In this document: positions 10,934-64,000 of the stretch, one piece after another
How positions within the stretch are numbered: the stretch's first letter is position 1
Layout: each line of letters opens with the position of its first letter
Source of the DNA: Chlorokybus atmophyticus
Lineage: Eukaryota; Plantae; Mesostigma and Chlorokybus algae
Length of the DNA stretch: 64,000 bases
Assembly: GCA_009103225.1 (NCBI GenBank)
Contig: RHPI01000401.1
Location: forward strand, 50,290-114,289
Direction: 5' to 3'
Notes under the pieces: model-generated
Database searches by the model: none
Told to the model about the DNA's origin: nothing
Seen by the model: only the letters and a program-made list of their open reading frames with translations
Program-made: the position numbers and the translations under genes

Positions 10934-10967
<34 letters not shown>

Positions 10968-11493
10968 NCCCCAACAGAAGTCCCGGCCGCCACCCGCGGT
11001 ATGCCACCAGCTATGGCGGCAAAATTCTAGATGCGCGGGAGCACACCGCTTGACGTTAAAGGACCATGAATGGTCCGTGCCTTCGGGCCGGGATTTTGCC
11101 CTGCTTAGTGAAATCGGTGGATCATGTATGGTCCAGCTGTCATTGACAGTCGGACCATACATGGGACCGTGCATGATCCAAATCTCACGTGAACGGTCCC
11201 ATGTTTTTTTGGGGTCGCACCATGTTTGGTCCGGCCAGTTGCCGGTCGCATCAGGACTAGGTAAGAGCCAGCCAGCGGACCAGGGACTTAATCATGAATA
11301 TGTACTGATAACAATTATTACTGGTCCGGCCAGCGGACCATTGAATCCGCAATGTTTATTCAAAACCATCAGAGTTTGTTGCAAATGCAGGAAAAGTGCT
11401 GCGTTTTGAGCCGACGTCACCGGCCGCGCTCGGCCTGCGGGGCGGCAGCGCATAAGGCCGTGGCGTCTTAGAAATGATTAGTGAAGAACACAT

Positions 11494-11565
11494 GCGTCCA
11501 CCGAGAGTCGAACCCAAGACCTTTGGAATATAAACACGACACCCTAACCACTAAGCTACATGCGC
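11494..11565 (-). pseudogene. Degenerate tRNA-like sequence (Ile-like; pseudo-tRNA or SINE head)
   Basis: Reverse complement GCGCATGTAGCTTAGTGGTTAGGGTGTCGTGTTTATATTCCAAAGGTCTTGGGTTCGACTCTCGGTGGACGC has an A-box (TAGCTTAGTGG) and B-box (GGTTCGACTC). Acceptor and anticodon stems are mispaired. Confidence 0.6.
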
Positions 11566-12661
11566 ACGTACCGGTGGGGATAGCGTAGTACTTGCATTGT
11601 CTCGACGGCCGCTTGGCGACTGTTGGCGGCGGAAATTGCACAGGAAGTCGGCGTTGTGAATTGACAGGCCCATAGGCAGTGCATGCGCTATCAATGTGCA
11701 TAGGCTGTACCAGTATTAATCAACGGTATTACATTGTTTTTGGTTATTAATGATGACAGCCGCAACTCGGCGGCTACCGAGGGTTGTGAAACCACAATGC
11801 ATTGTTGGGGGCTGTCCTTAATAATGTAACCTTGTCAGGGGTTGTCCATATCCTGCTTGCGTGCGCATACACACACCTACATCTTTATATATGTAAGCGT
11901 TTGTGAATATATATGCATACGTTTACATGACATAAATACCAAAACCGCATTGCGGCACCAACAGAGGTGTTTACTGGATTTCTTGGACACAATGCTTGAT
12001 TAAAGTTGCCAATCATTCTGCGGTCTCATCAGAGGCTATTATAACAAGTGACGTCATTGATGTATACTTTTTATACATATGTATATGAGACATACTTTGT
12101 ATACGGCTCACCCCCAAGTACTACTGATATAACCATTTAGACCTGCATATTCATGCGTATAAGAATAGATTCGTTTATGACACATGCTGACATTTATATA
12201 TATTATAAGACACCTATATGCATTACAAGATATATATATCATACAATGACGTATACACATATATAATGTTCATATATACGTAGATACTTGAATAAACGCA
12301 TAGAACATGTTAATGGTGCATGTTTACAAATTTTTGCAAATACACGTACGGTACTATGAACCATGTTGATTGCATAGGCAGCCCCTTACAGCTTAATTGA
12401 CAGCCGGCCGGCTGTCAATCAGCCGCCGACCATTTGCGGCTATCCACTTGCGGCTGTCCACGGTGTATAGCCGACGTCGGTGCGGCTTGTCAATTAACAC
12501 GTTAAGTGCACAATGTGCAATCAGGCATGTAGGCAATCTACTGTATCTTACGTAGGTTATTGCTACCTACTCATAATAGCCACAGGGCCGCGGTCACTGG
12601 TCCGTGCCGCACCGTACATGGTGCGGCACGGACCGTGCGGCACAAAGTACGGTGCGCGGTA

Positions 12662-13122
12662 CAGTCTACCCCCGTTAAAAGACTTCGCTTTAAGGGAATA
12701 ACCCCGCTAAGATCATGGATTATATAAAGACCAATGGTTTTACAGGCAAATATCTTCGGTTAGTGGAATAGTCTTGTACGTAATAAGACTAAGGAGAAGG
12801 CTTGAAAATCTAAGTGGGCTCAGTCTTGTAACGGGGTAATACCTTGTTAATAGCATGATTGTCTTGTTGATATTTGAATAATTCTACAAAGCATTAAGTT
12901 CATTTATTGTATTGTATGGTTTAAAGGAAATATGACAGTGAATTTTGTTACGTCAGCAAATGATGACGTGGCTTGAAATTATCGGTCGATACCCCCATCA
13001 ACAGAATATATATTCTTTAAACAATTAAAGAATATACAAGCTTATAAGCGCCAAGAGAATAACCTCGTTAGTGGAATAACAAGCTGAAAGGTAAACGTGA
13101 TGCTTATAACGGGGTTAGACTG
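12662..13122. mobile_element. pogo/Tc1-type MITE (461 bp, TA TSD)
   Basis: TA|CAGTCTACCCCCGTTAAAAG ... CTTATAACGGGGTTAGACTG|TA: 20-bp TIR with 2 mismatches and an AT-rich interior. Terminus resembles the pogo TIR at 40995. Confidence 0.85.
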
Positions 13123-13920
13123 TAGTAGGGCCACAGGACCGCGGGACCGCACCTGGTTCGCATTCAGGGCCAACGTACATTACTGGTCCGTGCCGCACCA
13201 TGGATGGTGCGGCACGGACCATGCGTGGTGCACGTCGCCAGCCATTCACGGGCCGCGGGTCCCAGAACGGACCAGGAACGGTCCGTCCCCCGCGGACCAG
13301 GTAGTTCTGGCTGCGGGACACGGACTATGCATGGTCCGCGGGGTCCGTGAAAGGACCATGCATGGTTCTTCAATGTCAAGCCGTGTGGAGATGACCCAGC
13401 GCAGTGAGCGATAACTCCAACACTATCACCATGCTTGCGTTACTGACCCCGCAACAAAGCGAATGCCATCATACTGTCGCCTGTGCATCGACAGACGTGT
13501 CATCACCGCGTCTCAACCCACATCACCACCACCGACACTCTTAAACGCGAGTAAACGACATCAACACACGACGGCCATCAACCGGCTGACTGACAAGACG
13601 CCATTGAGTCTTGACCGGCATTAACTGGCTGAAGAAATAGAATGCCTTGCGCGCGCCCCCCNNNNNNNNNNCCCGCCCCCGGCTGCAGACTGTGTCAGTA
13701 TTGGACATGCGTAGATTTATTTATTAGGTTTGATCTCAGGAGCGTAGCGACGTCTCATATGCTAATGTTTTTGTCTTTGGCGGCGGCGATTGCAGTCTTT
13801 GCAGCGTCTTGTGTCGTTTAGCGCTGGCTCGCTGCAAGCAAACCGCTTGGAAGGAAGAGGAACAGCCCGCCGGCAACATGGGTGCTTGCTGGCTTGATAC
13901 GTTGCGTATAACATGTTCGA

Positions 13921-43900: not shown

Positions 43901-44014
43901 GTGCATATGCGCTTAGCGAACATGCATTACCCCTAAGGACGTCGGTGACAGCGAAAAATATGCACATAACGCGGATATGCACTTATCAAATATGCATTTA
44001 TCGAGGTTAGACGA
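40995..44014 (-). mobile_element. pogo/Tigger-like DNA transposon (3020 bp, TA TSD)
   Basis: TA|CAGTCTAACGTCGATAAGTGCATA ... TATGCATTTATCGAGGTTAGACGA|TA: 24-bp imperfect TIRs with subterminal ATAAGTGCAT repeats. Confidence 0.92.
41370..43559 (-). pseudogene. pogo/Tigger transposase (HTH plus DDE_1-type domain), intron-containing, disabled
   Basis: SQSALSRLLK-like HTH, LEAALYEWF, FKQRRGIR, VFNMDETGLFY, AWMTS, ILLLDN, TSVIQPMDAGIIAAFKARY, ISNCWRKSGI. Frameshifts, including at (TGCA)6. TG-rich intron at about 42180-42450. Confidence 0.92.
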
Positions 44015-45114
44015 TAGTACCAACAATACCATTGTCGCAATGGCACCATCGTACCATACTGATGGTACGATAGTGCCATTGCGACAATAGTACTTTCGTA
44101 CCATTATAATAATACGATAGTGCCGTTGCGAGTCACGTTTCGACAACGTGTTTGAATAACTTGGGCTGCCCAAGTTATTCAAACGCTCAACGGCTTCAAG
44201 TTGAACAGAGCGTTAGCGGCAGCGGCGGCAACGGCAACGGCTAACAGTAGGTGAGCTTGGTTGCTGTCTGACGTTGTACTACGCGCAACACCGCATGCCA
44301 TCTAACCACGCTCCTTGCCTTGGAGCGGCCAGGCCAGGCCAGGCTAGGTCAGACCAGACCAGGCGGCGGCAGCGGGGCGGAGAAGGAACGGCGGCGGTGG
44401 AGCTGGAGCGGGCGGTGCAGGAGCCGCAGCTCAGTACAAGGGTAGTACTAGCAGTAGTACCTAGGGTAGTAGTAGCAGTAGTGGTAGTGGTAGCAGTAGT
44501 GGTAGTCTAGTCGTGGTAGCAGTAGTGGTAGTCCAGTCGTACTAGCAGTAGCTCAGAATATTACATTTTAGTTTTTTTTTAATTATTGATTTTTTTGTTT
44601 TTTATTATTTGTCACGCATTCTTGCACAGCTAATGACGACAATCACGTGTGACACCTAATTATAAATGAGCGATACCAGCAGGTACTTTTGAAGGTACAC
44701 ATCATTAACGGTAGGTACCTGACAACCTTAAGGTACCTGACAATTTTGCTCAGTTAGCGTACAGTCGCTGGTACCTAACTGATAGATACCTATTGATTAC
44801 CTGTTAGTTAGGTCAAGTCCCCTTTGCTTAACTGTTGAGTACCTGACAGGTACCTATTCATTAGGGTCAATCCCTTTATGCAGACGGCCGCCAACCAATG
44901 GTGACGGCCGTTATGCTCAGGTCCCTGTATCGAGATCGCCGATAGACTGAAGGTCGACAGTCTCACGAATATCCTCGGGTGCACGGCCGTTGTTAATATT
45001 CAGTCGGCCGGTAGGGGAAATAAATGCAACGCATAGTAATGGTACGACGGAGTCGTCACGCCAGTAAATGGCGGCCAAGTTTCTCGCCTCTGGCATGCAA
45101 GGGTAGCGGCGGCG

Positions 45115-47242
45115 GTGCGTGTTGCTGGATTTGATGATGCAGGTTACATTGGTAGCACCTGTGTCGACGTCAGTAGTGAGCTATGGGAGCCCTTTGTCTA
45201 TATTGCCACACGCAGCTCGGACTTCATGCACATTGTTAGCAGCAGGGCGTGCAAGCAAATTAAGCTGTATGTCGGCCAGCGTCCATTACATTACGATGCG
45301 GATCATGTTGAACTGGGGAGTTTGATCCAGGATGCGCACATGCTTGATGCTAAAGGACCCCTCCAGGAGACACACGCACAGGAGCAAAAGGAGGAGGAGG
45401 AAGTGAACGAGGGCTTTCGATGTGTGCGTGTGCCTCGGAAACCACGCCAACATGAAAGTGCAGGCGTCCGTTCCTTTGCACGCGTTTGAAACCAGGTGGT
45501 ATGGCTCGGAGCATGCTCTTGCGGTGGCATTTGTACAGTGCAACGACGGCCAAGGCCTGTCGGACTCCGACATGGGGTGAATCATCAAGTGCATCCGAAA
45601 TGCACATTTTCTTACCGAAGAGCTCCAGTGGGAGACCGGTGTGCATGTGGCCAGCTACTTCCGGACCACAATTGCTAGCTCTCAGTCGGAGGTGTGTTCA
45701 CGGTGTGCGGTGCATGTGCTTCAACCATCAAAGCCATGTCACATATGCACATGCGAGTGTGCTGCCATATCAAAACTACGTGACGGCTGACCTGCGCAAG
45801 CCTGGGAACCCTGAGGATCATGACATCAGCGCCACATATATGCCGGTCAAGGTCTGTGAAATGCAATAGAAATGCAAACTTATGCAGTATTTAATCTGAG
45901 GCCAAAATGGCTATTAATGCTCTTGGTTGTAGCTGGTATGGCTCGCGTGGTTGTATGGCAATCCGCATGCAGCTGATGGCTTAAACTTTCAGTACAGTGG
46001 TGACGAGCACAGCTTTGGCCATCCTTCCACGGGCGATTAATGGAAGGATGTTGAGGTGGATTGGAGGAGAGAGGTGGAGGAAGCGTCCTACTTGGCGTCT
46101 GCCATTTTGTACAATGACAAGACCACGCTGGACAGCGTGGGCAAGCGCTCTGGCTACCATCTGATGGCATCGCTTGCCAACTACAGTTGGGACATGTATA
46201 ATAGCAACATGGGGGTTGTTATGATAGCGCTTCTGCCAGTGGTTCACGCAGTGGCCGGGCATTCCACCTGGGCGCAGGGCAAGGAATCGTTCCTAATTCA
46301 AAAATGTGAGATTCTTCATGACGCTTTGAATGTAGTGTTAGGGGATGTGAAGTGGGCGCGCTGGGAAGGTCTGCAGCTCATCGACCCGAATGGCATCGAA
46401 CGTCGTGTGTTTCCCGCTCTTACAAACTACATCAGCGACTTGCAGGTATTGGGCATGCATGGTTGTAATCGGATGCAGCCCGACGGCAAACAGTGCATGG
46501 AGGATGTTGTCGGTGGAGCATATGAGTCTGTCGTATTGCAAGAGACTGCCACACTCACATGCACTGTGTCGGGCAACCAAATATGACATCCTTGTGATGT
46601 TTGTCTCGTCATCAATCAGATCTGTTGAAGATGAATGAAGACGCGGAATTGAGAACCGAGGCTTTCGACACACCCGCAATACGACAGCTGCGGGTGGACC
46701 TGCATAGCGGTGTTTGGAATGCACGCCAGACAGCTAAGGCTTGCAAAGAGCAGCACTCCATGCATGTCGAGGAGGTAATGGTCAAATTACCTGCATTCGT
46801 GAAGATGAATGGTTTTTCGTGTAAGTAGGCAATGTGGTTTGGCAATAGAATGCATTGTGAGGTTGGCGACAGTCGCGGATGCCGGGAGCTGACTGCTATT
46901 CTCGCCTTGCCCATGACGCAATGCATGTGCTGGAAGGCATCATTGACCATATACTTGTTGCTGTGTACGACGCTACGAAGAAACGCATGCGTCCATCCAC
47001 GAGACAAATTCATGCAGGCCAGACACATTCTTGGTGTTGCTTTTGTGTAAACACAAAAGCAAGCAACACGTGCTCACAAGCAAATGTGCACAGGCTGAAT
47101 GCATGCAAGGCGACTCTACGGGTTTTGCACTTTGAGGCACCCACAAGCACAGTAGATTTTTTCCTGTCGAACCACTCCCTTAAAATCGTGGAGAAAGTGG
47201 CGCAACTGCTGCCGGTCCTTGCAGACGGTTTGCTGCTTGACA
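45115..47242 (+). pseudogene. Plavaka-like (CMC-related) transposase, degenerate, interrupted at 47243
   Basis: HPSTGD*WK, AILYNDKTTL, YHLMASLAN, IALLP, GLQLIDPNGIERRVFPALTNYISD, HPCDVC and HDAMHVLEGIIDHI match the Plavaka pattern (SDKT, PDG..R..FP, AD, CPxC, DxLH). Confidence 0.75.
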
Positions 47243-48393
47243 CACACGGATTGACGTTCGGGGACCATGTATGGTCCTTCCACGGACCCCGCGGGCCATA
47301 CATGGTCCGTGCCCCGAGGACCACGAGTGCCTGGTCCCCGGGGGACGGACCGTCCATGGTCCTTTCGGGGCCCCGATACCTGGCGCGCAGTCGCGCACCA
47401 TACATGGTCCGCGGCCGGACCAGGTGATATACCGGTCCGATATGCCGTGAAAGTCCGGAACATGAATGGTTCGCAGCCGGACCAGGCATTTTCCCGGTCC
47501 GACTGTCAGTGGGTCTACGGACCATGCATGGTCCGGACTACATCAATGCTTGACCATATATGTTCCGGTAGATAACATCAAAGTGGCTGGTCCGGACCGG
47601 AATCATTGGGCGGACCATTGCTGGTGCACGCTGAGCTTATCGGTCACTTTTGACAAGCAGCACGCACCGTGCATGGTCTGCGGCTCATGAAAGCTCATAC
47701 AGGTCCACATTTTCGTAAGATGGCGGACCATTCATGGTCTTTAACCCAACCAGGCTCTTCCTAATCCGATTATCCGCGGGTAGGGACCATGCATGGTCGG
47801 TACCACATGGTTGCTGAACCATGCATGGTTCGAGGTTGGTCCTCACGTAAATGATTCCGGTTCGGCATATTATGTAATTACATGGAGTGAAGACTGGGCA
47901 GTCGCACCATGCATGGGCCACTACTGGCCACTACCGGCGCGACGGATGAAAAAAGAATGATCTGCAAATTATGGCAGTGGAGGATGTGCTCATTGACCCC
48001 GTTAGTGCATGCATTCGGACAAGTGAATGCATTGACAGGGTCAACCAGCACATCCCTCCCATTGCCATAAGATAGTATTTTGGGTATGTTCTCGAATATG
48101 ATACACGTCATAGCTGAGATTGCACGGACGCTGGGATACAACGTAGCCGAGCCTCATCTGATCGTCGATTCAAGCGTATCGAACGGTCGGCATATTCAAA
48201 TTACATGGAGTGAAGACTTGACAGTCGCACCGTGCATGGTGCGACTGTCGAGTCACGTGCATGGGCCAACAATAGGGTTCCTACCTACATGGTCTGCGTA
48301 ATAGGGTTGCGCTCAGAGAGGGAGCGGCGGCGCTCTGGTTGGTGGCGGCGGCCTCGTTGGCGGTGTCTTTGCTGGCAGAATCTAGCTGTACCA

Positions 48394-51300
48394 ATGGCCA
48401 GTAAAAGGGCTGTCCGCTTCGCCAAGGACATTAGTACTAAGCTGGGAATCAACTTGCAACCAGCCAGTAAGAGGAACACCTTTCGTAGGAACAACCGCCT
48501 TCGCAGCCAATAGAGTTCCCTACCCTTACCGGAGCAGGCTGATGTCGTCCAGCACCATGTGGTTGATGACCAGCCCATTGAGGCTGTCAACCCTCAGCCC
48601 GCCCATGAAGATCCGGCCATGCTCGGGCAGCATAGCGACATCAGCCAGCAGCATGAGCAGTAAGTTGACCACGCTGTTGTACCTGGCGTACTGCTCTTCA
48701 TTGAGTATACATGACAGTATGCATGCCACTAACAATAGGAATGATGTACATAAACAGCCTTCACCATGCTAAGAGACTGTCGATCACCTTAGTGCACTTG
48801 CTGCCTTGCTGTGATCTCCACTGTCAGCCGATGGTGCCATTGCACGTGGTGTGTCACTGACTGCAAGATTGCTTCAGGCATCCCTTGCTTGGACAGCCGA
48901 CTGTTAATTTGGCCGGCACCAGCACTGAAGCGGCAGCTACACTTCACGAAAGGGAACAGTCAGGTGGACAGCCGACTTTCGATGTTGCCAGCACCAGCAG
49001 TGCCGCGACAGCTCCACTTCAACATCAGGCTGATCCACAGCCGACTGTCAACATGCCCAGCTCCAGCAGCGCCGCAACTGCTCCACTTCAGCATCAGTCG
49101 GATTGACAGCCGACTGTTGACATGCAAATTGAAGACATGTTTGAGCCTCTTGGTAGCAATGATGATGATCCAAAACAGCAAGAAGTGTCCTACACAATTT
49201 GCTCTTGCCTAAGGTGCCTTGGCAAGGTGAGCAATGAACTTGTTGCGCGCACAGTTGTCGTACTGTAGCTGCCCATGTCTGGGAATGCTGCATGCCTGCG
49301 ACTGTCCGTAGCGCCACCATGCGCGTCCGTAGCCCACCATGCGCGCACTTTCAGCATTGCCATCCATGCTACCTACACTGACAGTCGTATGTTGCGATTG
49401 GGCAGTGGGTTGAGTTGGAGACTTCATTGGCTCACATGCGACTGGACGAGGCAGCGCAAGAAAGTATGCACCCACCGCCAATGCCTTCAGCGCAATGTGA
49501 TGCACCTCAACCCGGCATTTCTCGTCAACAACAGTCCTCGAAAACACCCACGCAAAAAATGCTGGACAAGTTCATGTCGTTGCTGACAGACTTGGAGGAC
49601 TCTCATGCACAGCAATCACTGATCAACAACGTGCTGAAGACTGTTTTTGGTGCCGAAGACTCCATTGCACAGCTGACCAAGGATCCCGCCTACAACCACA
49701 GTCAGCTCCGTAACGATCTCCATGCCTTGCTCGGCCAGCGCAACCCCTCCGAGCCGGCTGACATCACGGCCGTCGATGCATTGCTGACTTCCATCGGAAT
49801 GCCAGAGTCACAGAGATATACAGCATGCACACGATGCAATTATCTCTTTCCAGATGCCTATCCATCAGGCTACGGTGACTGCGAGGACAGCTGCCAAGAC
49901 GACAGTCGCCACAAGATTCTGAAACGCTTGTGGGAACAGCCGTGCGGAGGCGAATGCGGGCGCACGCGCAAGGAGTGTATAGATTTTTTGTACACGCCCA
50001 TTGGTCCAAGACTCGGTCCGTGGCTGCAAGTTCCTTCGATCGCATATGACAACCTTGCTGCTTGGCGAGACAAAGACACCTGGTTCAACGTGCCAGCAAA
50101 CCATCCCCCAGCTCCTCAATGGGAAGCTTGGCATGGCAGCAAGTGGAGAGATCTGACTGCTTTTTGGGACTGCACGAAGACCATCCCTCTGCCAAACAAA
50201 TGCGACTGTGGACGCTACAATTATGACATTGACATGTCGCAGCACAGGGATGGTTATCAGAAATGGCATTGCGAGTGCTCCTATGAGAATGAAGAGGCTG
50301 CGCAGCAGTGTACTGGAGACCCACGCAACATTGGGCTCATGCTGCACAGTGATGGTTTCAGCTGCGCATCCACTACAAAGCGGAGCACCCTTGTCATCAA
50401 CGTCGTTGTGCTCAATGGAGGCAAGCGCGTCAGCTCACAGGCGTCTTCCATCATGCCAGTAGTATTTGTCCCAGTTGACGAGCTACTCGACGCGGACAAG
50501 GACTGTCTGAACCCGTTCATGAAGCCCATGGTGGATGAGTTGGAGGATTTGTACGCCATGGGCTTCCCCACGCACTACGGATTGGACTCCAGCCAGGTGG
50601 ACATCAAGCTCCCTCATCGATTGGCTGGTACGCTCGCATGCATCTGTTTAGCAGTGCCACGCGCACGCAGCTGTTCTTGCGACTGTCATATGTATGGAAT
50701 GCATTGCTGTTCTTGTTTAAGCTCAGGACTGTCTTTGCGCTGTCAACTGCGACTGTCAATCTTATGCGCTCCACTGCTATGCTTGTATGAGTTCGCTTGA
50801 GCAAGGCTGTTCATGCGACTGTCCATTCCAGGTTCCATGTCCGACAGTCCAAATCGACAGTCGCGGCTGTGTCCCGTGCATAGTCGCGTACGCGCGCTGC
50901 TGCGCACGAAGCAATGAGTCCTGATGCCTCCAATGGTTTGCAGGTGATAAGATTTTCCTGAGAGCCATGGTCATGAACATTGCCGGTGACAATCCAGCCC
51001 AAAGCGAGATGGGGCAATTCAAGAATGGCGGCTTATGCGGTTGCAGGGCTTGTTGCCTGCTGGCAACTCATATCCGGCACTCTACTGTCACCAAAAAAGT
51101 CACTCAAGATCCCAGCACTGGCAACGATGTTGTTGAAGAAACTCGGAGCAACAGGACCGACTTCCACTATGCTAGCAGCCGCTACCACAGTCGCCATCCA
51201 TTTGCCAAAAGAACTGCGAGGCAACATACCAGCTGGCCGATGAAGTTGAAAGCATTGAAGACCCCAATCGCAAGAAAGAAAAGGCCAAGAAGTATGGCGT

Positions 51301-53525
51301 CAACGGGCTGTCGCTTTTGTGGAGGCTTTGGCGGATGTACAAGTTTGACCCATGTCAGGACATGGTCTTTGATACCATGCACACGCTAGCCGAAGGACTG
51401 GCCAAGAGCTTGACAGCCTGCACTCTGATGGATGGTGGGGACGAGCAGGTCAGCAAGGCTGACATCGACAGTCGGCTGTCCGTGATGAGAAATGCAAGAC
51501 CAAGAGAGGTGAAGAATGGTAATCGCTGGCCACACGGCCTCAGCAGTCGCCTTGGATGGTGGAAGGCGCAGGAGCACCAGTTCTTCGTGCAATTCGGTGT
51601 GCCCTATGTTTTTCACAAGCTGCTCAGCGAAGAAAGGAGAGATCTCGTCATGTGTCTCCACATGATCTTCCGCTTATTCTTTGACATCTCACGGCGCTTT
51701 GGTTGGGATTTAGACCGCCTGGAGCTCGCGGATGCATTGCTCAGGTACTGGAAGGTCAACAGCGAGATCTGCTTTGGCACCAATAAAATGATTTTGGAGC
51801 ACATTGCGGGAACTTGCCACCTGCTTGACAACATCCGTAGACACGGCAGCCATGACGTGTTCAGGTGCTACGCCGCTGAGCGCGCTGTGAAGCTGTATGT
51901 CAACACCCCGTCCAACTGCAAGGATTACGAGATCAGCTTTATGAAACGTTCTGTCAGGAGATGGTTTGTGCGACTATTTGGCGTCATGCGTGACGATCAG
52001 CGTTCAGGCCTGCTGCTCTGCCATAGAGTTGGCAACATACTGTCTACAATCTGCAAAACAGAATTCAACGGGTCCACCTGGTATGAGGTCGCCACAATCA
52101 AGCACGCAGAGGATATTTGGGCGCTTGTGGAAGCATACCCCACCCTGGCACACTCCAGGCGCATCAAAGAACAAGGCATAGTGATTGGGCGAGGCAACAC
52201 TCATTATGTCGCGAGCGACGGCTTGTTCGAGAGCATCTGTGCACAAGAGAACATTGCCATTGGCACCCCGACACGGCGAACAGTGCGCGACTACAAAGCC
52301 TATATGAGGGACGGCCTGGTATACAGGTGTGCTTTATATCTTAATTATGAATGCAGCACATTTGTCATCGACAGTCCCACCAACGACTGTCACACAAACT
52401 GTCACTGGTGCGACTGTCCGTTATAGGGTCTCTATCTCTGTTATCTACAGTCCCAGCATTGACAGCCGCGCAGACTGTCAATGCTGAGACTGTCAAACAG
52501 CGACTGACAGATATTCTCTCTCTTTCTCACACACAGGCGCGACTGCAAGGATGCTGTGATGCTGGATGGAAACAGGCCAGCCACCGTCAACAAAATCTTC
52601 ATATTCTTTCACGCCGAGTGCCATGTGTACATTGCTGTCAACCGCTACAGCCTGCAAAAAGATGCTGCTGGAAATCAATGCATGGACGCAGATTCCGGTG
52701 CCTTGCATGTGGGGCGTTTGGAAAACACCAACATTCTTGTCCGAGGCCACCAGCTGCTGCGCAAAGTGTGGATGCTGACGGAGAGACCAAGACTGCTCCC
52801 CTACATGCTGGCTTACGATTTCAGCAACCCAGAGCTGCGATTGCGAGCAGCTGATATACCTCTGCCAGTATGGCCTGAAAACGGGGATGTGGTGCTTGTG
52901 AGACATGAGGATGAGAAGAAGTCGGTCTTTGACTTTCGCGTGCCAACTGACCCACCAGCACCTGTATCTGATGATCCACCGCCATGGATTGTTATTGTTC
53001 GACAGCCTCAAGTTGACGATGAAGGCAACATGTTGGTTGACTACCTGAAGCCTGCTCCTTGATCAGCGAGTGCTCGCCAAGGCCTACCACGGTGGGTGGT
53101 CAATAAGGACTGTCGCAACCAAAAGGTGTCACCCATTGCGGTCAAGAGGAAGCTCAACTGGCAGCAAGCTGATCAAGGCAGATGGCAAGAGCAGCCGACA
53201 ACTGAGGTTGTGCGTATGTTTTACGACAGGCACATCATGTACTACAAAGCAGGCGAGGCTGAGACAGGTACGCATCACTTGTCTCATGAGTGTTGTTCCT
53301 TGACAGTCCCATGGACAGTCGGCTGTCCATAGGACTGTCGGGTAACAACACTATCAGTGTGTGATTTTGGCACAAGGCATTACACAAGGCATTACTGAGC
53401 ACGCATTGGTTACTGTGAGTAACACACTTGTACATTTCACAGATTATGTACACAAGGAAGGGTCAAGCGTACCAGCAGATCTACTTGCAGCGCGCAAAGG
53501 CCAACTGCTAGGCAACTTACACTAA
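48394..53525 (+). pseudogene. CACTA/EnSpm TnpD-like transposase, multi-exon, lightly disabled
   Basis: YTPIGPRL, WHGSKWRDL, RNIGLMLHSDGF, PFMKPMVDELEDL, GDNPAQSEM..CGCRAC, GVNGLSLLWRL, FDTMHTLAEG, WKAQEH, HLLDNIRRHG, CYAAERAV. Introns at about 50625-50943, 52328-52536 and 53271-53443. One frameshift near 51215, stops at 48511 and 53060. Confidence 0.88.
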
Positions 53526-56500
53526 AGCTATAAACCAGGGAAACATCAACCAGCATCAGGAGGAGGAGGTGGAGGACGAGGAGGACCAGCAGCAGCACCA
53601 GCAGCAGGAGGAGGAGGAGGAGGAGGAGGACGAGGAGGTCTTGGTATGGAGCACTGAGCGCGGTAGCTGCTGAGGGCTGATACACCTGCGGGGGTTTGCA
53701 ACCACGCCCATGCAGCGGCATAGTCCATTGGACGCTGTAGCTGATACAATGGCGATGCCGCTGGTCCTCGAAGTGAAGCCATCCCTCCGTCAAGGTTACG
53801 GAGGTGGTGCACAAACGTTGATAGCATGACAACCATTACGTCAAACATGGAAATTAGGGTAGCGCGCCTTGTGATTTCGGGTTCCTGCAAGATGCCAGTG
53901 TAGTGCGACTCGGCGTTCCTGTAGAAGTCCAAGAACCCACTGGCACCTTGTTGAAAGCCAGTGAATGGAATGGCACTCCGTTGTGATTGCTGCCACGCCT
54001 GCCTGATTTGAGCTGCACGCCGTATGAAGATACCCGGCCATTCGACTGGGTCCTCCCGAAATCTTTGTGGCCAATCGTCAAAGAGCTGAGTGGTTGGCAA
54101 ACGGCCCAACACTATTGTACGTTCATAATTTCGCAGTGCAAAAAATTGGTTGGAAACCTCACGCGCCCACTCCCTGGTTCTGCCGATTAGGTACTGCACA
54201 CGATCCTGTGCTACCTGCTGGAGCTGTGCTCTGTGATCTGCCACCTGCTTGTCCAGCTGTTCTTTGAGGTCTCTCACCTGCTTGTCTAAAGCTTCTGCAC
54301 GTGCTAGCGCTTCATTCAGCTTTTCGTCAACGCATGGGTCGATAGCCCCTCCAACAGCCTCTGATGTTGAAGGCACTGCAGCCAGCCTTTGCTCCAACTC
54401 TTGATAGCGGGTTTGCGCCTCTGCCAGCTGCCGCTCTGCTTCATTGGCTCTTCTTGTCGCGGCATCGACAGTCGCTGCATCGACAGCCCCTCCAACGGCC
54501 TCTGATGCTGACTGCCTCGCCGCTTGCTGTGCTACCTCCTGCTCCAGCTGGCGAATGCGCTGCCGAGAACTCTCCATCTCTTCCCCAATCTTGGCGCCCG
54601 CAGAGGAGCTAGAGGCCATTGCCAGCATGCGCGATTGCAAATCAAAGTTTCGCAATTCGAGGCCGCGAATCTGGGCGTCAATAGATGCCGCACGCTCCTT
54701 GGCGGCTTCGATTGCTGTAGCCAACTCCTCTTGCAGTTTGGCGACCTCAGCATCGGTGGTTGCAGCCCTCTGCTGCAACTCCTCCCTCTCCTTGCGCAGG
54801 TTGTCCACCTGAGAGTTGGAAGCGACAGCCCTCTGCTGCAACTCCGCCAATTCCTTTTGTAGCTTGGCGACCTCAGAGTTGGAAGCTGCAGCCCTCTGCT
54901 CCGCATGCTCCAAATCCTTGCGCACATTGTTGACCTCAGCATCGGTTAATGCAGCCCTCTGCTCCGTCTCCTCCAAATCATTGCGCAGCTTGGCAATAAC
55001 AGCATCTGATGCCCCAGCCCTCTGCTCCGACTCCTGGAACCTCTTGCGCAGCTCGGCTAAGAGTAGGTTGAACTCATCGTTTGTTCTTGATGCTGTCTTT
55101 ATCGTCTCCTCCAACTCCTTGCGCACCCGGGCGACCTCAGCGTTGGCATCTGCAGCCCTCTGTTGCGTCTCCTGTAACTCCTTGCGAAGGATTGCAACCT
55201 GTTGCTGCGACTCCGCTACTTCAAGGTCAAGAGTACGCTGGTAATACTGCTTGCGCGCCTCGTTCACACTGACTAGGCTGGTCTGCAGGTTGTCACGAGT
55301 TGCAAGAACGCGCTCTTGTCCTTGCTGTCGCACATAGACATCAAGTACAGAGGCCACAACAGATTATCAAAGCCCCCCCCCCCCTTCTTCCACAAAGACT
55401 GTACGCGATGCAATTATTCTCACCAATGCTTGTCTTGTAAGCCCGAGGGCGAATGACAGCTGTTCTGCAGAAATCTCCACAGCGTTTGCCACACATTTGC
55501 CACTCGCTCAATTTCGATGCGTCATTGACGGCCTTGCGGTGCTCCTCGTGGGCCTTCTTGAAACCTTCAATTGTATCACGCGCTGCTGCTAGAGCCTCCT
55601 CTCCAGCTTGTGGCCGCACAGCTGGTAGAGTTGGCCGTGCAGGAGTGTCTGGCTGAAGGGGACGTTTCTTCTCAGCTGGGGGTGTAGACATGGGGGCACT
55701 TGTTCTCTCTCTCTTTCTCTTGGCAGATGGACGGGGACTGTCATGGAAACTGTCGTGAGGTGGACTGTGGTGAGGTGGACTGTCGGCTGGTGGACTGTCC
55801 GCGCGACTGTCATAAGGTGAACTGTCCTTGGGACTGTGGGGAGGTGGAGTGTCAGGTGCAGGATTTTCACGCTCAGCTTGTCTCTCCAGCCAGGTCTTCA
55901 GTGGTGGAGGTGCGGGGTGCAAGGGCACTCTCAACTGATGGAGATGATCGTCGTGTGAATGGGGAGTATCAGGGTTGTTGATCGCCACCAATAAAGATGC
56001 TGCAGCTTGTGCCTCCGCCCGTGTGTCAGCTTCGCTCTGCTCTTCTACAAGTGTACGCACAATGTCCCGCTTGAGTTCGTCAAGCCATTCCTTTCTGGAC
56101 TCCTTGAAGCCCTTCTGCAGCATACCTCGGATCTTTCTCTCCCAATCCTTTTCCCAGTCCTCCCCCTTCAGTGCCAATGCTGTCGCCTGCCTGGTGAGAG
56201 CCCCCTCTCTGGTAGCAATAGCTGTTGTCTGAGTTTTGTGCATCTCGGCAGTCTTTCTCTGGATACCAGCGACCTTTTCCTGCAAAAACAGGTAACAGTT
56301 TAAGCAAATGTGTGAAGTGAAAGGTGCACCACATGCTGACGTACCCTGATCACGTTCTCTTGTTCTATCCGTAGGTCTCACTCCCTAATGACTTGTTTTA
56401 GGGCGTCGACTTGTCTGTTTGCGGCCTCTTTTATTTCGTAGGCAGCATCATAAACCGTTTTACAGAAATGAACAGATATTTGACGCTAAATATGGGCTTC

Positions 56501-57009
56501 AGAATCTATCTGTTGACACATGCACGTGATCTTGGTTGTTAGCATACATGTCACAGTGCATGCAAGTGCACTGCGACAGGAATGCAAAACAACAGACTGT
56601 CGATAAGACTGTCGAAGAGATTGTCATTGTTGGAAGACTGTCAGTACAACTCACCATTCTTGTCTTTGCGTCCGCATTGGGCATGCTGAAGACACGCTGG
56701 ACCAAACGCATGGAATATGCGAAGTCACTCTCGCCCAGCTGCCTTGGTGGCTTGCTGGTAAGCAACCACATAGCGTCCTCCGTGGTCAACTTCCAACTTC
56801 TCGCAAGCCTCTGCGCCGCATCCTCCGTTTGCTACAGTTGGGTCTGCCAGCAAAGAAGGCAAGTTAGCTTCCAGTGTCACAGTTGTGGAGTCATTGACAG
56901 TCTCGCATTGACAGTCGCACTAGCAAGGCATGCAAACTGGGCATGCAGCAATGCAATCACACTTACTTGGTCTGTCTGCCCGTCTGGTGGCGCATGGAAA
57001 GGGGTGTAG

Positions 57010-57490
57010 TCCAAGAGTAGCTCCTCCCCTGCCTTGATGTCCCTAGTCGCATACACAATGACAGCTGGGTGGCCGACGTCATCGAAGTCCGAGTAGAACA
57101 TGACGTTGGGCTGAGTGTGCCCATGTGCGGAATTGATGTAAGCCGCTACACAGCCAGTGCGGGGGTGCCCGTCGATGATAACCTGATATTGGCTTGGTGT
57201 ATCTGGTGGAAACAGGTTGACGTGATATCGCCGGTGGTGTCGGATGTCGCTGATTTGCTGGTAACGATGCAAGACCTCCTCCATCTCCTGTTGCTTTAAC
57301 CATTTGCCGTCATATGGCAACAGGTAAGCCTCTGCACAGATGCGCACAAGTCATGAGTGATCCGCGAGTACACAGAGAGACATGCACACAAAGATACACA
57401 CGCACACACGTGCACGTACCATTTGGAATGTCTTCGCAGGCAAACAGTCCCAGTTCAGCACCAGTGATGGTTGAGTCCTTGATCAACCAG
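57010..57490 (-). other. SET domain (lysine methyltransferase fold) exons
   Basis: GxGLFA N-terminal motif, YINS..PN (NHS variant) and ELxxDY C-terminal signature, split by an intron at about 57418-57336. Confidence 0.85.
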
Positions 57491-58312
57491 CTGTGCGTAA
57501 GATACTTGAAACTGCTCGTTGACTGGGATGCGTGTGGATGCTCTTGCATCCTCCACATTATCCAGTCTCCACAGCTGGTGCTTGTCTCCAGCGCTACGAT
57601 GGATGAGCTTGAGGTTTGGTATCTCCCGGTCAGTCTGTTTAATGCAGTGATAAGTAACCATCAGACTCTAGCGCAAAGATAAACACAGACCATTACATTG
57701 GCATAGGCTGTCATGATATGTTCTCACCCTCAAATAGTCAGCAGAAAGTTAAGGTGGCGCTTTGGAACCTGTTGAGGGGTAGCGTTTCACCTGAAATTTT
57801 TTCATCTCTTCAAGAGCACTGGCGAATTCCGCTGCATAATCCACTGCTGCGGCTTGGCGACGCCTTGAGGGTTTCCGCTTCGGTGGACTGGGTGTCGGAC
57901 CCTCCTCAACCTCGACCTTGTCCTCGTCCTCGTCCTCGTCCTGTGGTTCTTCTGCTACTCCTGCTCCTCTTGATCTTCCTGCTCCTCGAGATCGTGTTGC
58001 TCTGCGTGTCCAGGTATGCATAGCCGCCAGCTGTTGCATTTCTTCGTACAGTTCTTTGGTCTGAAACATGGCAGGGTTAGTACGCATGTTGCAGTATGGT
58101 TTCATTGCTGCTGTGCGAATTCAGCAACTCACATATCCTGGAATAGCGTTGATGTCTGCCATCTTGCAGTGCTTCAAGTTTGGGACTATGGGATTGGGGT
58201 AAGGGGGCAGTTGCTCATCCTGCAGCACGCCGCTGCTGGTGAGTTGCATTGTGCGTTCAAACATGTCACGAAACTTCAAGTAGTCCAAGAACACGACGGT
58301 TGCACTCGTATT

Positions 58313-58390
58313 ACAACCGATATGCGCAGGATTCAAGCAACGGCTGTCAAGTACAACCGATATGCGCAGGATTCAAGCAACGGCTGTCAG
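58313..58390. repeat. 40-bp tandem duplication (2 copies)
   Basis: acaaccgatatgcgcaggattcaagcaacggctgtca repeated at a 40-bp period. Confidence 0.95.
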
Positions 58391-59105
58391 GTATCTGCAC
58401 CATGAGCCAATGCGCTGTACGCATGCGCAAGGCACATCATTGACAGTCCAGGCAGGATGTTGCAAGAACTTGGATCAAGAATGCCTGAGGGTTCGTACCC
58501 TGATGGATTGCTGGATTTCCTCTGCCAACTTTTCGAGTGTAGCCTTGTCCTCCCTCCCTCCCTTATTGCTGAGCACGCGCATCATTCGGCACAGAGCACC
58601 TAACCAGTGCTGTGCGATTTTCGTGGGCTTGGTCTCTCCCATGCCAGGTTGGCCGTCTGCATTACGGTGACCAGCGTGCACGTTGTTCATACAGTAAAGG
58701 CAGCCCCATATAAACTGCGGCGCTGTGGACGACCTCCTTCGAGCCATGGTGTACTGCCTGGGACTGTCCACTGTGCCAAGAGACTGTCGACGCCTACCCA
58801 ACAGCACCCTGAACCAAACCCTTCACCCCCAATCTTTGCTCAACAACAACAACAACCATGCCAAAGGTCTTGCAACGCTTGTGTACGCCGCCAACCCTAA
58901 CCCACAGACAGCCGTCAATTCCTAGGCGNACCGACAGCCGTTAATTCCTAGGCGAGTTCAACCCTAATTTACCGACAGCCGCGTCGCTCTCTTAGCGAGT
59001 TGCATTGTTGCGCTACTTGTGCGGCTTGTGTGGCTTGTGCGAACTCACAACGCTTGTGCGGCTTGTGCGGTTGATAATGTAAGGCACTGGTCCGACAGTC
59101 CCTGT

Positions 59106-59425
59106 TGACAGTCGACAGCTTGGGTTGCTCACTTGCTGTGGTGCCAGGACACTTGCACTTCTGCTGTGCTGTTTGCCAGTTGATTTCAGCTGTTGAAAGG
59201 TGAGCAGGTTGCTTGCAAGCTTGAATGCTTGCTTGCTTGCATGACAGTCTCTGTTCACAGTCGACAGCTTGGGTTGCTCACTTGCTGTGGTGCCAGGACA
59301 CTTGCACTTCTGCTGTGCTGTTTGCCAGTTGATTTTAGCTGTTGAAAGGTGAGCAGGTTGCTTGCAAGCTTGAATGCTTGCTTGCTTGCATGACAGTCTC
59401 TGTTGACAGTCGACAGCTTGGGTTG
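59106..59425. repeat. ~149-bp tandem repeat (2 copies plus a partial third) between divergent genes
   Basis: acagtcgacagcttgggttgc...gcatgacagtctctgtt repeated, with unit starts near 59106, 59256 and 59404. Confidence 0.95.
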
Positions 59426-59489
59426 CCCCAAGTGTGAAGTCAAACTGTTTGCTCTAAGTTCAGTTGTTTGTTCAGGCAGTCCAACTGAC

Positions 59490-60960
59490 ACCATGACCAC
59501 TGGGGAGGCAAGACAAATGCCCGCTGCAGCTGATTGCTTCAGAGCAAAGGGGAACCACTTGCTGGGCCAAATGACGGGCTCGCAGTTCATGATGAAACCA
59601 GAGTTCAAGCATATGCGCACAACGCATATCAACAACCTGGCGAAGCAAAAGAGATGCTGAGCAAGTGGCCACCACCTCAAGGCATGAAAGGCACAGACTT
59701 CAAGCAGAACGCCCAGCACCGGCAGGAGCTGGACGATGTCTGCGAGACTGTATTGCAGGCGTCAGAGCCACTGGTCTTTGACACAGACCACACCCTGAAA
59801 TGGACCAAAGGCAAGCTGCTAGTAGAGTTGAGCTGTGTTGAAGCAAGCCTTCCAAGCAGCATGGCACCTTCTCCTCGGTTTTATTGTGTCTCCTTCTCTG
59901 TCTTGCCATTGACAGTTCTTGCCCTGCATATCATTCATGCTTTTAGTTGTCGGTTGCTCAGTAACCAGTTGCGTTATGCTATGTTCCAAGATGTGACCTC
60001 CTTGCGGATGGCTACCAAAGGACTGTCGCTGCCATGTCTCATCTGCTTGTGTTTCTGCAGCACAAATCAAGAGTCATGTTCTCCAGCTACAGTACTCTGT
60101 TGGCGCGAAGCGCGGTAGTGATTACGGGCAAAGCATGGAAGAACGCAATGCTACCAAGAAGCAAAGGCGATCCAGCGACAGGGAAGCTACCCAAGGCAGC
60201 CGCGCTACCGAAGCTGCTGCTGGCTGGGGCATGACTTTTTCGATTGGCAGGGACTTGAGGGCCAACCAGCAGGTGGTCATGCTTGCGCCTTTGACTGCTG
60301 AGCCTCTAACAGATGCTCAGTACCCGGCCACTTGGCTGAAAGAGAGGTAACTATTGTGCTGTCGGCTGTCGATCAAGTTCTACAGTCCTCACTGGTTTGC
60401 TTAGCTGTGCCTCCATGGCTGCGTACTGGATTTACACATGCTGCCTGCTGTCTGTTAACTCAGAATTTCCTAACAGGGGTGCGGACGGGTTCGCTGAAGA
60501 TCAGGTGTTTGACATTGCCAACAACGCAGTAGTTGTTGGCGTCGCCACCATCAAGTTCGTATGCGAGCCAGAACAACCAATGCGGACGTACAGTGTCTGT
60601 GTTACCCACTGGATGCCAGTGAGAAGCGAGGATGGCAACCTTGGCATTCGCCTACCTGTGAAAGAGAGGCATTTTCTCTATGGCCAGCTGGCAAGCAGCT
60701 GCCATGGTGGGCGTACTCTGGAGGTACATTGCTTGCTGTGGATATGCTCCTGCTGTGACTGTATGGTGCATGAGTGCAAGAACATTTTGTGTTAAACAAC
60801 ATGCAGGGCAGGGAGATGGAGTGGCCCATGATGTTCTTGGCCGGCGGAGGCATCTGTCCATGTGAGGCATGCGGCAACAACGATCGCATTGTGGTGCCGG
60901 GTTGCATCAAGGACATACTGCCTACGACCGCAGCTCGGCACAGCACAGACACAGAGGTCA
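59490..60960 (+). pseudogene. Third multi-exon unknown gene of the CACTA element (possible TnpA-like)
   Basis: Open exon-sized blocks bounded by donors (GGCAAG about 59810, GTAACT 60347, GTACAT 60724, GTCAGT 60957). DIANNAVVVGVATIKFV weakly resembles Tnp1/En/Spm C-termini. Truncated by the gap. Confidence 0.4.
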
Positions 60961-61096
60961 GTAAGGGCTGTTGTCAGCGCATGGCATGACTCATTGGCAC
61001 GCGTTTGCTCGCACACTCACAGTAGCACACATACCATCTCTTGCAACATCACGCACAGTGTCCAACTATCTGTTGCTCACTGCCTCTCACAGACAC

Positions 61097-62090
61097 NNNN
61101 NNNNNNNNNNNNNNNNNNNNNNNNNNNNNNNNNNNNNNNNNNNNNNNNNNNNNNNNNNNNNNNNNNNNNNNNNNNNNNNNNNNNNNNNNNNNNNNNNNNN
61201 NNNNNNNNNNNNNNNNNNNNNNNNNNNNNNNNNNNNNNNNNNNNNNNNNNNNNNNNNNNNNNNNNNNNNNNNNNNNNNNNNNNNNNNNNNNNNNNNNNNN
61301 NNNNNNNNNNNNNNNNNNNNNNNNNNNNNNNNNNNNNNNNNNNNNNNNNNNNNNNNNNNNNNNNNNNNNNNNNNNNNNNNNNNNNNNNNNNNNNNNNNNN
61401 NNNNNNNNNNNNNNNNNNNNNNNNNNNNNNNNNNNNNNNNNNNNNNNNNNNNNNNNNNNNNNNNNNNNNNNNNNNNNNNNNNNNNNNNNNNNNNNNNNNN
61501 NNNNNNNNNNNNNNNNNNNNNNNNNNNNNNNNNNNNNNNNNNNNNNNNNNNNNNNNNNNNNNNNNNNNNNNNNNNNNNNNNNNNNNNNNNNNNNNNNNNN
61601 NNNNNNNNNNNNNNNNNNNNNNNNNNNNNNNNNNNNNNNNNNNNNNNNNNNNNNNNNNNNNNNNNNNNNNNNNNNNNNNNNNNNNNNNNNNNNNNNNNNN
61701 NNNNNNNNNNNNNNNNNNNNNNNNNNNNNNNNNNNNNNNNNNNNNNNNNNNNNNNNNNNNNNNNNNNNNNNNNNNNNNNNNNNNNNNNNNNNNNNNNNNN
61801 NNNNNNNNNNNNNNNNNNNNNNNNNNNNNNNNNNNNNNNNNNNNNNNNNNNNNNNNNNNNNNNNNNNNNNNNNNNNNNNNNNNNNNNNNNNNNNNNNNNN
61901 NNNNNNNNNNNNNNNNNNNNNNNNNNNNNNNNNNNNNNNNNNNNNNNNNNNNNNNNNNNNNNNNNNNNNNNNNNNNNNNNNNNNNNNNNNNNNNNNNNNN
62001 NNNNNNNNNNNNNNNNNNNNNNNNNNNNNNNNNNNNNNNNNNNNNNNNNNNNNNNNNNNNNNNNNNNNNNNNNNNNNNNNNACATACACG
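61097..62090. other. Assembly gap (N run)
   Basis: Run of N. Confidence 1.
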
Positions 62091-64000
62091 AGCAGCCAGA
62101 CCTTGTTGTCTGCATGGATGAAGAGCCCAGGGTCTGCAGAGGATGCGGTGAAGCCAAGTGCCTCCAGCTCCTTGGTGAGCTTGATGTGCCACATACGCGG
62201 TGCCTGTCGCAGCCCGTACAGTGCCTTGATCAGCTTGCACGCTGTGCCTCTCTCCCCTTCTTCATATCCAGGTGGTTGGTCGATGAGGATCTCCTCCTCC
62301 AGCTCTCCGTAGAGGAAGGCAGTCTTCACATCCAGGTGATGTAGCTCTAGGTCTTCAGCAGCAACCACAGCTAGCAGTGCACGGAAGGTGGTATGCTTAC
62401 TTGCAGGTGCAAACACTTCGTTAAAGTCCACACCTTCCTTCTGCAAGAAGCCCTTTGCCACCAGTCTTGCCTTGTAGCGCTCAATGTTGCCCTGACCATC
62501 ACGCTTCACCTTGAAGACCCATTTCACTGGAATGGTCTTCACTCCTTGCGGTAACTGCTCCAGTGACCAAGTGTTGTTGGCATGGAGTGACGCAATCTCC
62601 TCGTCCATAGCACGCTGCCATTGCTCCGCATCTGGTGCTAACAATGCCTCCTCGTAGGTGCTTGGCTCCTCATTGTGCACACTGGCGACGTGTGCCTTGT
62701 GTAAGAAGTCAGGTGCCTTTCTCTCCCTCACTGGGTATCTCCGAGCTGCGTGCTCCTGCTGTTGGTACGGCTCCTCTTGACCTGCTACAGCTGAGTCCTG
62801 CTCACCCTTATCGTCGATGATGGCCTTGCCTGTAGCCTCCACTGTTTCAGGATGCTCCGACTGTGCTTCATCTTCATCTCGAGGAAAGAAGCCTGCTTCT
62901 GGTTGTGATAATCCCTGATGGAAAACCACCTCTCTACTCACAACAATCTTCTGAGTGTCCTCGAGCAAGATCCTGTAAGCCTTGGAACCCGGTTCATAGC
63001 CAACAAAGATTCCCTTCTTGCTGACCGGTTCCAGCTTGTGCCTGAGCTGTTTAGGCACTAGTGCATATGCCGTGCATCCAAACACACTCATACCACTCAC
63101 ATCTGGTGTGGTCCATAGAAGTGCTCCCACAGAGTCTTCTGCTTTGAGCTCACCGGAGACCTGTTGCGGATGTAGTTGGCAGTGAGTACCGCCTCCTTCC
63201 ACAGACTGTCTTCCATCGTTGTGTCGTTCAGCATGGCTCGAACACGCTCCAAGAGTGTCCTGTTGAGGCGTTCAGCTGCTCCATTCTGCTGCGGGGTGTA
63301 GGGTGCCGCTGTCTCGTGGCGTATGCCCTTGCTGGCGAAGAACTCCTTGAACTCCTTGTTGATGTACTCCCCTCCTCGATCACTCCTCATTGCCTTCATC
63401 TTGTTGCTAGACTGGGTCTCCAACAAGGCCACGACTGTGCGCACAGCTCCAGCAACTTCTGACTTTAGCGTCAACAGAAAGATGATGGACAGCTTGCTGT
63501 AGTCGTCGAGGAATGTACCAAAGTACCTGGCCCCTCCCTTCGCCACAATGCGCATAGGGCCACAGACATCCATGTGCACAAGCTCGCAAGGATGCTGACT
63601 GCTTGAAGAGGATGATGGGAATGGCATAGCATGCTGCTTTGCAACCAGGCATGGTTCACAAAGTGCACCTGATGCATTCTTGAGTTCTTCTGTGCTGAGA
63701 TGGATGCCCTTGACCATCTTCTCAGCGACAAGGCGAGTGAGGTTGACGTAGCTGAGATGCCCGAACCTCCGATGCCACAATGTTGGCGACTCCTTGTCCT
63801 TCACCACCATGGCTTGAATGTCTCTGTCTTGAGGCTGCTCCACGTGGTAGAGCCCTCCCGGATCAGCGATTCCAACCATGTGCACGACCCCATCAAGGAT
63901 GACTGTGCAGCCACCCTTCCGAAATAGGATCTCCGCGCCTAAGCGCTCCGCAACCCTCACAGAGAATAGACTCGCAATAGCCTTAGGAACATGCAGGACG
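62091..64000 (-). mobile_element. Copia pol fragment: GAG-pre-integrase, integrase and RT (ends outside the window or in the gap)
   Basis: LWHRRFGHLS, CEPCLVAK, LVHMDVCGP, SDRGGEY, PQQNGAAERLNRTL, WVFKVKRD, RYKARLVAKG, LDVKTAFLYG, LYGLRQAPRMW, LLVY. One frameshift near 63150. Confidence 0.95.

Follow-up and report, generated by a model that had tools for sequence, protein, structure and literature searches.

To our knowledge, experimental proof that transposons regulate themselves sequence-specifically by way of private motif arrays comes from Arabidopsis alone, from the VANDAL/VANC and Spm/TnpA systems. The motif that VANC21 binds, YAGTATTAY, is crowded into the introns and the intergenic and terminal non-coding DNA of VANDAL21, in part as tandem repeats (Hosaka et al. 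2017, PMC5735166). TnpA of Arabidopsis Spm1 (KAKUSEI), whose motifs are clusters of CCVTCGCAAA, activates cognate copies and requires a high-density cluster to do so; the motifs and the TnpA-induced hypomethylation are both confined to the transposon termini, and flowering plants seem to be the only group with TnpA-like proteins (Sasaki et al. 2026 preprint, 10.64898/2026.08.24.746577). Here we analyse a 64-kb stretch of DNA from the streptophyte alga Chlorokybus atmophyticus (contig RHPI01000401.1), called the window below, in which a CACTA/EnSpm-like element of ~14 kb (47243..61096, plus strand) carries many copies of the heptamer GACWGTC (GACAGTC or GACTGTC) in its body; all motif statistics rest on this single element copy. 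We found no paper naming GACAGTC or GACTGTC as a motif, and none describing a SET gene inside a CACTA element of streptophyte algae.

GACWGTC in the element and in the rest of the window

A pattern search found 53 GACWGTC in the window, compared to a mean of 8.8 and a maximum of 15 in dinucleotide-preserving shuffles. Exactly 43 of them lie within 48200-60030, where an earlier, sequence-only reading of this DNA had counted about 43, and every sub-cluster that it listed is present; its figure of about 8 copies elsewhere has to be raised to 10, one of which (47501, in the left subterminal region) still belongs to the element, and the claim that copies elsewhere are at background level stands. 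The element as a whole, whose left end is at 47243 and not at 48200, holds 44 copies, and the other ~50 kb of the window hold 9, which is the background density (0.2/kb). In an unbiased scan of all 5- to 9-mers, comparing 48200-60030 with the rest of the window, GACAGTC/GACTGTC was the most enriched 7-mer (43 versus 2.4 expected, Poisson p ~7e-38) and its sub-words topped the 5- and 6-mer lists. No other 7-mer exceeded 31 copies in any sliding 12-kb stretch of the whole window, and outside the element and its subterminal repeats none exceeded ~19 copies per 12 kb. The excess also holds when Markov models of order 1-2 are trained on the element's own sequence: these give 2-3 expected copies for the 43 counted. 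The enrichment is real and highly non-random.

A single recent tandem duplication is ruled out as its cause. Clustering of the flanks (+/-20 nt, either orientation) left 38-42 independent contexts among the 44 copies, at least 38 of which have unrelated flanks, and Tandem Repeats Finder (TRF) placed 12 of the 44 in arrays, with periods of 12, 13, 15, 69 and 149 bp. Neighbouring motifs are spaced by 12-15 bp in ten instances.

The motif is specific to the element within the window, as had been proposed. Gypsy sequence has one GACWGTC in 10 kb and a copia-rich stretch none in 9.5 kb, while 38106-47242 has four in 9 kb and the first 6 kb of the window none. Host DNA is represented by the N-terminal part of a 1,3-beta-glucan (callose) synthase gene (350-2036, minus strand; FKS1 domain 1, E 6.5e-29), in which the ~2 kb, with introns, contain no GACWGTC and provide a very small host-intron control. 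Looked at for methylation decay, the CpG observed/expected ratio and the CWG density of the element are not distinctive. Two distant CACTA loci of other organisms (those of transposases P0013 and P0003; L001, L002) showed no saturating word.

The exact heptamer is ~18-fold enriched in the element, and its one-mismatch variants together stay near background (40 versus 27 expected) with the exception of GACAGCC/GGCTGTC, found 19 times in the element versus 10 outside it, or ~8-fold after length correction. Since GACAGCC is also enriched, the motif unit is GACAGYC. With sites oriented on the central A, the extended consensus is a-T-Y-GACAGTC-(not A)-c, and the flanks are asymmetric: of the 44 sites, 20 have A at -3, 23 have T at -2 and 36 have a pyrimidine at -1; downstream, none has A at +7 and 23 have C at +8.

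Compartments and orientation of the motif

The element interior contains three genes: gene 1 (49122..53510, plus strand), encoding a tnp2-type transposase (Transposase_21); gene 2 (53546..58747, minus strand), encoding a SET domain (Pfam SET, E 3.4e-8) and a long coiled coil; and gene 3 (59494..61096, plus strand), a multi-exon gene that is divergent from the SET gene, is cut by an assembly gap and has no family matches in Pfam or the protein atlas. Most of the motifs (35 of the 44) are non-coding, in agreement with the sequence-only reading. The highest density is reached in the transposase introns, with 16 motifs in 880 nt (18/kb) compared to 4 in 3.5 kb of transposase exons (1.1/kb); introns thus hold 16 of the 20 motifs of this transcription unit (binomial p 1.4e-8). 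The divergent intergenic or promoter region between genes 2 and 3 (58748..59493, 746 bp) has 7 motifs (~9/kb), and 5 lie upstream of the transposase ATG, one of them in the subterminal region. The remainder are 6 in putative gene-2 introns, 5 in gene-2 exons and 1 in the putative first intron of gene 3. Clustering in introns, which the earlier reading claimed, is therefore well established in gene 1; in genes 2 and 3 it depends on introns that we assigned only from open reading frame (ORF) breaks and GT..AG consensus.

The transposase introns were placed using a five-exon model (49122-49226, 49406-50627, 50944-52326, 52537-53267 and 53443-53510, with GT..AG borders). The raw ORF gave a weak match to Pfam Transposase_21, below the cutoff (E 8.5e-5), whereas the spliced 1169-aa model aligns with distant tnp2 transposases over 500-930 residues (E 1e-64 to 1e-70). 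These alignments are contiguous across introns A and B (P0013, residues 95-1027; P0035, residues 339-858), and hence both introns are confirmed. Intron 1 (49227..49405; GTGAGC..CAG), whose splicing restores the frame, has 2 motifs (49300 and 49380). Intron A (50628..50943), whose junction is crossed by the homologue alignment, has 6 (50681-50856), and intron B (52327..52536), crossed by the P0013 alignment, has 5 (52370-52488) and an internal hairpin with 19-bp arms (52447-52493). The 3 motifs of intron C (53268..53442) lie at 53302-53333 in a near-perfect hairpin with 30-bp arms (53289-53352). Upstream of the gene are a hairpin with 20-bp arms formed around a GACAGTC/GACTGTC pair (48215..48254) and, directly before the ATG, tandem repeats of 69-75 bp (48882..49125), each with the composite GGACAGCCGACTGT(C); all these features are on the plus strand. 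A 19-mer, CAT(C/G)GACAGTCGGCTGTCC, occurs once in a transposase exon (51463-51481) and once in intron C (53310-53328); in reverse-complement form it is found again in the 69-bp repeats that precede the gene.

The putative gene-2 introns with motifs, all on the minus strand, are 56560..56654, which starts GTGAGT and has 3 motifs (56595, 56607 and 56636) partly in a 12-bp tandem repeat; 56832..56967, after the SET domain, with 5' splice site GTAAGT and 2 motifs (56896 and 56910); and the putative first intron, 58272..58496, with one motif (58442) and two 40-bp repeats containing a GGCTGTCA variant. The divergent promoter region carries its motifs at 58762-59405, 5 of the 7 in 2.2 copies of a 149-bp tandem repeat (59094-59426), and has three GACAGCCG sites at 58907-58980. 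The gene-3 motif is at 60021.

Exons contain more motifs than their protein sequence requires. Synonymous codon shuffling, done within four in-frame coding blocks, gave a mean of 1.9 motifs compared to the 9 seen, and none of 2000 shuffles reached 9. Four of the nine lie at 55736-55805 in an Asp-Ser-Pro-Pro coding repeat of gene 2 (its fifth exonic motif is at 54467), matching the Asp-Ser coding repeats noticed earlier; with this repeat excluded, 5 motifs remain versus 0.84 expected (p 0.002). It is thus the nucleotide word that is favoured here, and not merely tolerated. Moreover, in transcribed DNA 15 motifs are in sense and 16 in antisense orientation relative to transcription, and both orientations are present inside single introns. 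The lack of orientation bias despite an asymmetric extended consensus points to a motif that is read at the DNA level rather than at the RNA level.

The carrier element, its termini and its relatives

The element has two of the hallmarks of CACTA/EnSpm transposons, a tnp2-type (Transposase_21) DDE transposase in the spliced model and a subterminal repeat array, which consists of GGACCATGCATGGTCC-type palindromes over ~650 bp (47260..47920). Its left terminal inverted repeat, CACACGGATTGACGTT (47243..47258, plus strand), matches two other termini in the window; altogether four CACACGGATTGACGTT-type termini were found (11042+, 13387-, 17912+ and 47243+), and these begin CACAC(G/C)G rather than CACTA/CACTG. 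The right end of the 47243 copy is lost in an assembly gap, an N run at 61097-62081, and a 3-bp target duplication, GAG/GAG, could be identified around a 2.3-kb relative. Palindromes of the GGACCATGCATGGTCC type are also present at the related ends (11060-11330, 13130-13370 and 17930-18030). As had been claimed, they are distinct from GACWGTC: the 950-bp left subterminal region has a single GACWGTC (47501), and its palindromes form a separate motif system. Their core at 47260-47920 is CATGCATG, which we take to be the RY element bound by plant B3-domain factors, and their outer half-sites, GGACC/GGTCC, share the GAC/GTC triplets of the body motif at wider spacing.

The 2.3-kb relative (11042..13387, plus strand) is non-autonomous and has the same termini. 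It contains one GACWGTC and five GACAGCC/GGCTGTC, so that GACAGCC is enriched there too, and the variants reported earlier for this derivative were found again as GACAGCC at 11755 and 12399/12410. Its interior is AT-rich and unrelated, with a palindrome, TTGACAGCCGGCCGGCTGTCAA, at 12397-12418, and a poly-C run of ~40 bases lies just upstream (10930-10975). The different subterminal motif, together with a transposed derivative that has one copy of GACWGTC, implies that the motif is not needed in cis for mobilisation, and what fits best is an array separate from the terminal sites used for transposition. The remaining terminus belongs to an orphan left end of the family (17912-18039; 91% identity to 47243-47371) that has no partner right end in the window and is followed by a copia-type gag/pol ORF (20226-21551); the element at this end was probably broken by nested insertions. 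Just past the assembly gap is a retrotransposon integrase ORF (63097-63960, minus strand; rve, gag_pre-integrase).

The transposase of the 47243 copy is defective: one base is deleted near 51217, shifting the frame, and a TGA at 53060-53062 ends it prematurely, whereas in contigs of two public DNA runs 51217 is followed by an additional A and position 53060 reads A (giving AGA); the copy is probably dead, or these are assembly errors. Public DNA runs, in a comparison that lists 40 of 309 differences, also show a multi-copy family in which the exons can be aligned and alignment breaks off in the introns, precisely at the exon borders (50634/50937, 52328 and 53275/53420). One public contig skips 53275-53420, the hairpin block being absent or replaced in some copies, and a public contig joins sequence resembling the 3' end of a gene-3 intron (60775-60803) straight to 50655, which suggests rearranged element variants in the source genome. 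In ~330 nt of loose ends from diverged copies there was no exact GACWGTC, a weak hint that diverged subfamilies may differ in motif content.

Beyond the source genome, the homologue search with the 461-aa transposase ORF gave one distant match, and an exhaustive search of representative proteins gave nothing above 35% identity to this ORF. As only distant protein matches were obtained, the element family is absent from protein collections. The terminal-repeat pattern had no match in a metagenome scan. We rejected as unrelated 120 metagenome contigs with three-motif clusters, which are strictly periodic 16-21-nt satellites without similarity to the element; those at L050, L056, L106 and L115, several from sample Ga0307489, are strictly periodic 20-21-nt satellites of the TAAGACAGTCAAGGCCA-ATAT type.

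A proposed private binding-site array and the alternatives to it

We tentatively favour, at somewhat less than an even chance, the explanation that the GACWGTC copies form a family-specific array of sites for a protein, through which the element controls its own expression or chromatin. The GACAGYC cis-element would be kept dense in the non-coding interior, that is in the two promoter regions and in introns, chiefly the transposase ones; the array would be bound on double-stranded DNA by a sequence-specific protein, most probably the element's own product; the high local density of sites would make this binder specific for copies of its own family; and the binder would control transcription or chromatin of family copies in trans, the outcome presumably being activation or anti-silencing as opposed to repression. 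'Anti-silencing' is a label given to GACWGTC by analogy. As a private address code this is plausible and partly supported by the pattern, from which we infer the functional steps.

The analogy is with VANDAL21 (Hiun), and the likeness that the sequence-only reading saw to the published VANC21 target pattern, of short and dense motifs in non-coding and partly tandem DNA, is borne out (PMC5735166). In both cases a short motif is enriched in one transposon family and rare elsewhere (here, within the window), is concentrated in introns, intergenic and other non-coding DNA and partly resides in dynamic tandem repeats, and in both the density of sites, not single sites, would give specificity; the fast intron turnover seen here also resembles the dynamic non-coding regions of VANDAL21. 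The two differ in that the carrier here is a CACTA/EnSpm element with a tnp2 transposase and the carrier there is Mutator-like, and in that we detected no VANC-type protein, with no match to a VANC-related Pfam family in any ORF or exon segment of the element. Moreover, the core here is palindromic and occurs in both orientations, unlike the VANC21 motifs, which are arrayed in one; most copies here (all except 12 of the 44) are outside tandem arrays, and the motif is favoured in exons too. Protein binding and loss of methylation are known for VANDAL21 and would be predicted for the present array. En/Spm TnpA is an element-encoded regulator of the same superfamily and likewise has family-specific motif clusters, but the termini here carry the GGACCATGCATGGTCC palindrome and GACWGTC fills the element body. 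By its anatomy the element would work like the VANC21 and Spm TnpA systems and yet be a member of neither, because it has no VANC protein, belongs to another superfamily than VANDAL21, and has its motifs in mixed orientation and in the body, not the termini.

An element-encoded binder, for which the SET/coiled-coil protein or the third gene had been put forward, could not be substantiated: Pfam, the protein atlas and PDB sequence searches, the last with the SET/coiled-coil gene and gene 3, found no DNA-binding domain. A homologue search with the C-terminal helical domain of the coiled-coil protein was uninformative. Two single-sequence AlphaFold models of gene-2 and gene-3 pieces had a predicted local distance difference test (pLDDT) score of 57 and 55, too poor for a fold search, and these pieces, in family and such structure comparisons, gave no match to a TnpA-like protein. 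A BED-like Cys/His pattern suspected in exon 1 of gene 2 was not supported. Dimeric coiled-coil factors of the AP-1/GCN4 type bind a 7-bp pseudo-palindrome, TGA-C/G-TCA. The GACWGTC core is likewise made of two inverted 3-bp half-sites around one central base, and would suit a dimeric binder; the element encodes a long coiled coil that could dimerise, but Pfam detected no bZIP or other basic region in the element proteins, and the coiled coil is a resemblance, not evidence. More specifically, the SET/coiled-coil dimer, alone or with the gene-3 product, might be recruited to the GACWGTC arrays in the bodies of every copy of the family and deposit a histone mark that shields these copies from host silencing or tunes it, which we consider unlikely.

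Several observations weigh against the private array that we favour. None of the three genes has a recognised DNA-binding domain, even with ten further exon pieces included in the Pfam search along with the protein atlas. The copy is defective (frameshift and stop) yet has kept all its motifs, which youth explains as well as selection does. Several gene-2 introns and most gene-3 introns have no motif. Inside internal repeats the motif turns over at an approximately neutral rate: one of six in the 149-bp repeat has mutated, and the two units of intron B differ by several changes.

The alternative that survives best, possible if rather improbable, is that GACWGTC is the site of a host transcription factor, and that the arrays are intronic and promoter enhancers timing expression to a life-cycle stage or stress. 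The sites do cluster in both promoter regions and in first introns, and with T at -1 in 20 of the 44 and at -2 in 23 about half of them read (T)TGACAG; TGACAG is the core bound by TALE homeodomain proteins (KNOX/BELL/MEIS). The failure to find an element-encoded DNA-binding domain also speaks for a host factor. On the other hand, 16 of the 44 sites have C at -1 and hence no TGAC, and DNA outside the element, including the ~2 kb of the host callose-synthase gene, is at background. Transposons loaded with host-factor sites are known, for example zebrafish EnSpm-N6_DR, which is reported to carry p53 sites (PMC3485254). It resembles the present case in having multiple copies of a short palindromic factor site in a CACTA-type element, and differs in that its binder is a known host factor and its carrier is non-autonomous, whereas the non-autonomous derivative here is nearly without the motif.

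It is unlikely that the array is a neutral by-product in which motif units were spread by slippage, template switching and gene conversion in the fast-evolving non-coding DNA of a young element. Such spread would account for the twelve motifs in short tandem arrays, for three clusters that are local inverted duplications forming hairpins, for the recurrence of the 12-15 bp spacings, for near-neutral mutation of motifs inside repeats and for the wholesale replacement of introns between diverged copies. It does not account for the unrelated flanks of at least 38 of the 44 copies, nor for an exact heptamer that is present, in either orientation, in two promoter regions, in exons of two genes and in seven introns or more. 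The excess over codon shuffles arises in exons, where slippage cannot act freely, and no other repeat-rich part of the window yields such a word.

Still less probable is an RNA-level signal, in which splicing regulators or paired hairpins of the A and T forms would govern alternative splicing or intron retention of the transposase, or give rise to small RNAs. En/Spm and P elements are regulated by alternative splicing, the motif is densest in the transposase introns, and the hairpins of intron C (z = -6.2) and intron B (z = -4.2), like that at 48215-48254 (z = -5.25), are very stable. However, intron A and both gene-2 clusters (z 0.2 to -1.6), and likewise the 149-bp repeat, are no more stably folded than shuffled sequence, and hence the hairpins are a local by-product of inverted motif pairs and not a common denominator; the divergent promoter, which is untranscribed, holds seven motifs and others are upstream of gene 1, and the 15:16 orientation is not expected of an RNA signal with an asymmetric extended consensus. 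Finally, internal transposase-binding sites that help assembly of the transposition complex, as a transposition enhancer, are very improbable: the terminal repeat has TTGAC(G/A)TT, similar to the TTGACAGT part of the extended motif, but the 950-bp subterminal region, with its own palindromes, has hardly any GACWGTC, the transposed 2.3-kb derivative has one copy and the sites are spread over 12 kb, not near the ends.

Altogether, it is plausible that the GACWGTC arrays are motif arrays for transposon self-regulation, a known principle that would here take a new form. Were they host-factor sites instead, the motif would show the life-cycle timing of the element's expression. Through its link to a SET-domain cargo gene the element is a candidate for setting its own chromatin state. 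If this were true, an early-diverging streptophyte alga would have a histone methyltransferase system that is encoded by a transposon and targeted by sequence, and its mechanism would differ from those of VANC and TnpA, neither of which uses an enzyme of its own. A motif array filling the body of an algal CACTA element would suggest that the strategy known from Arabidopsis is older and more widespread in the green lineage.

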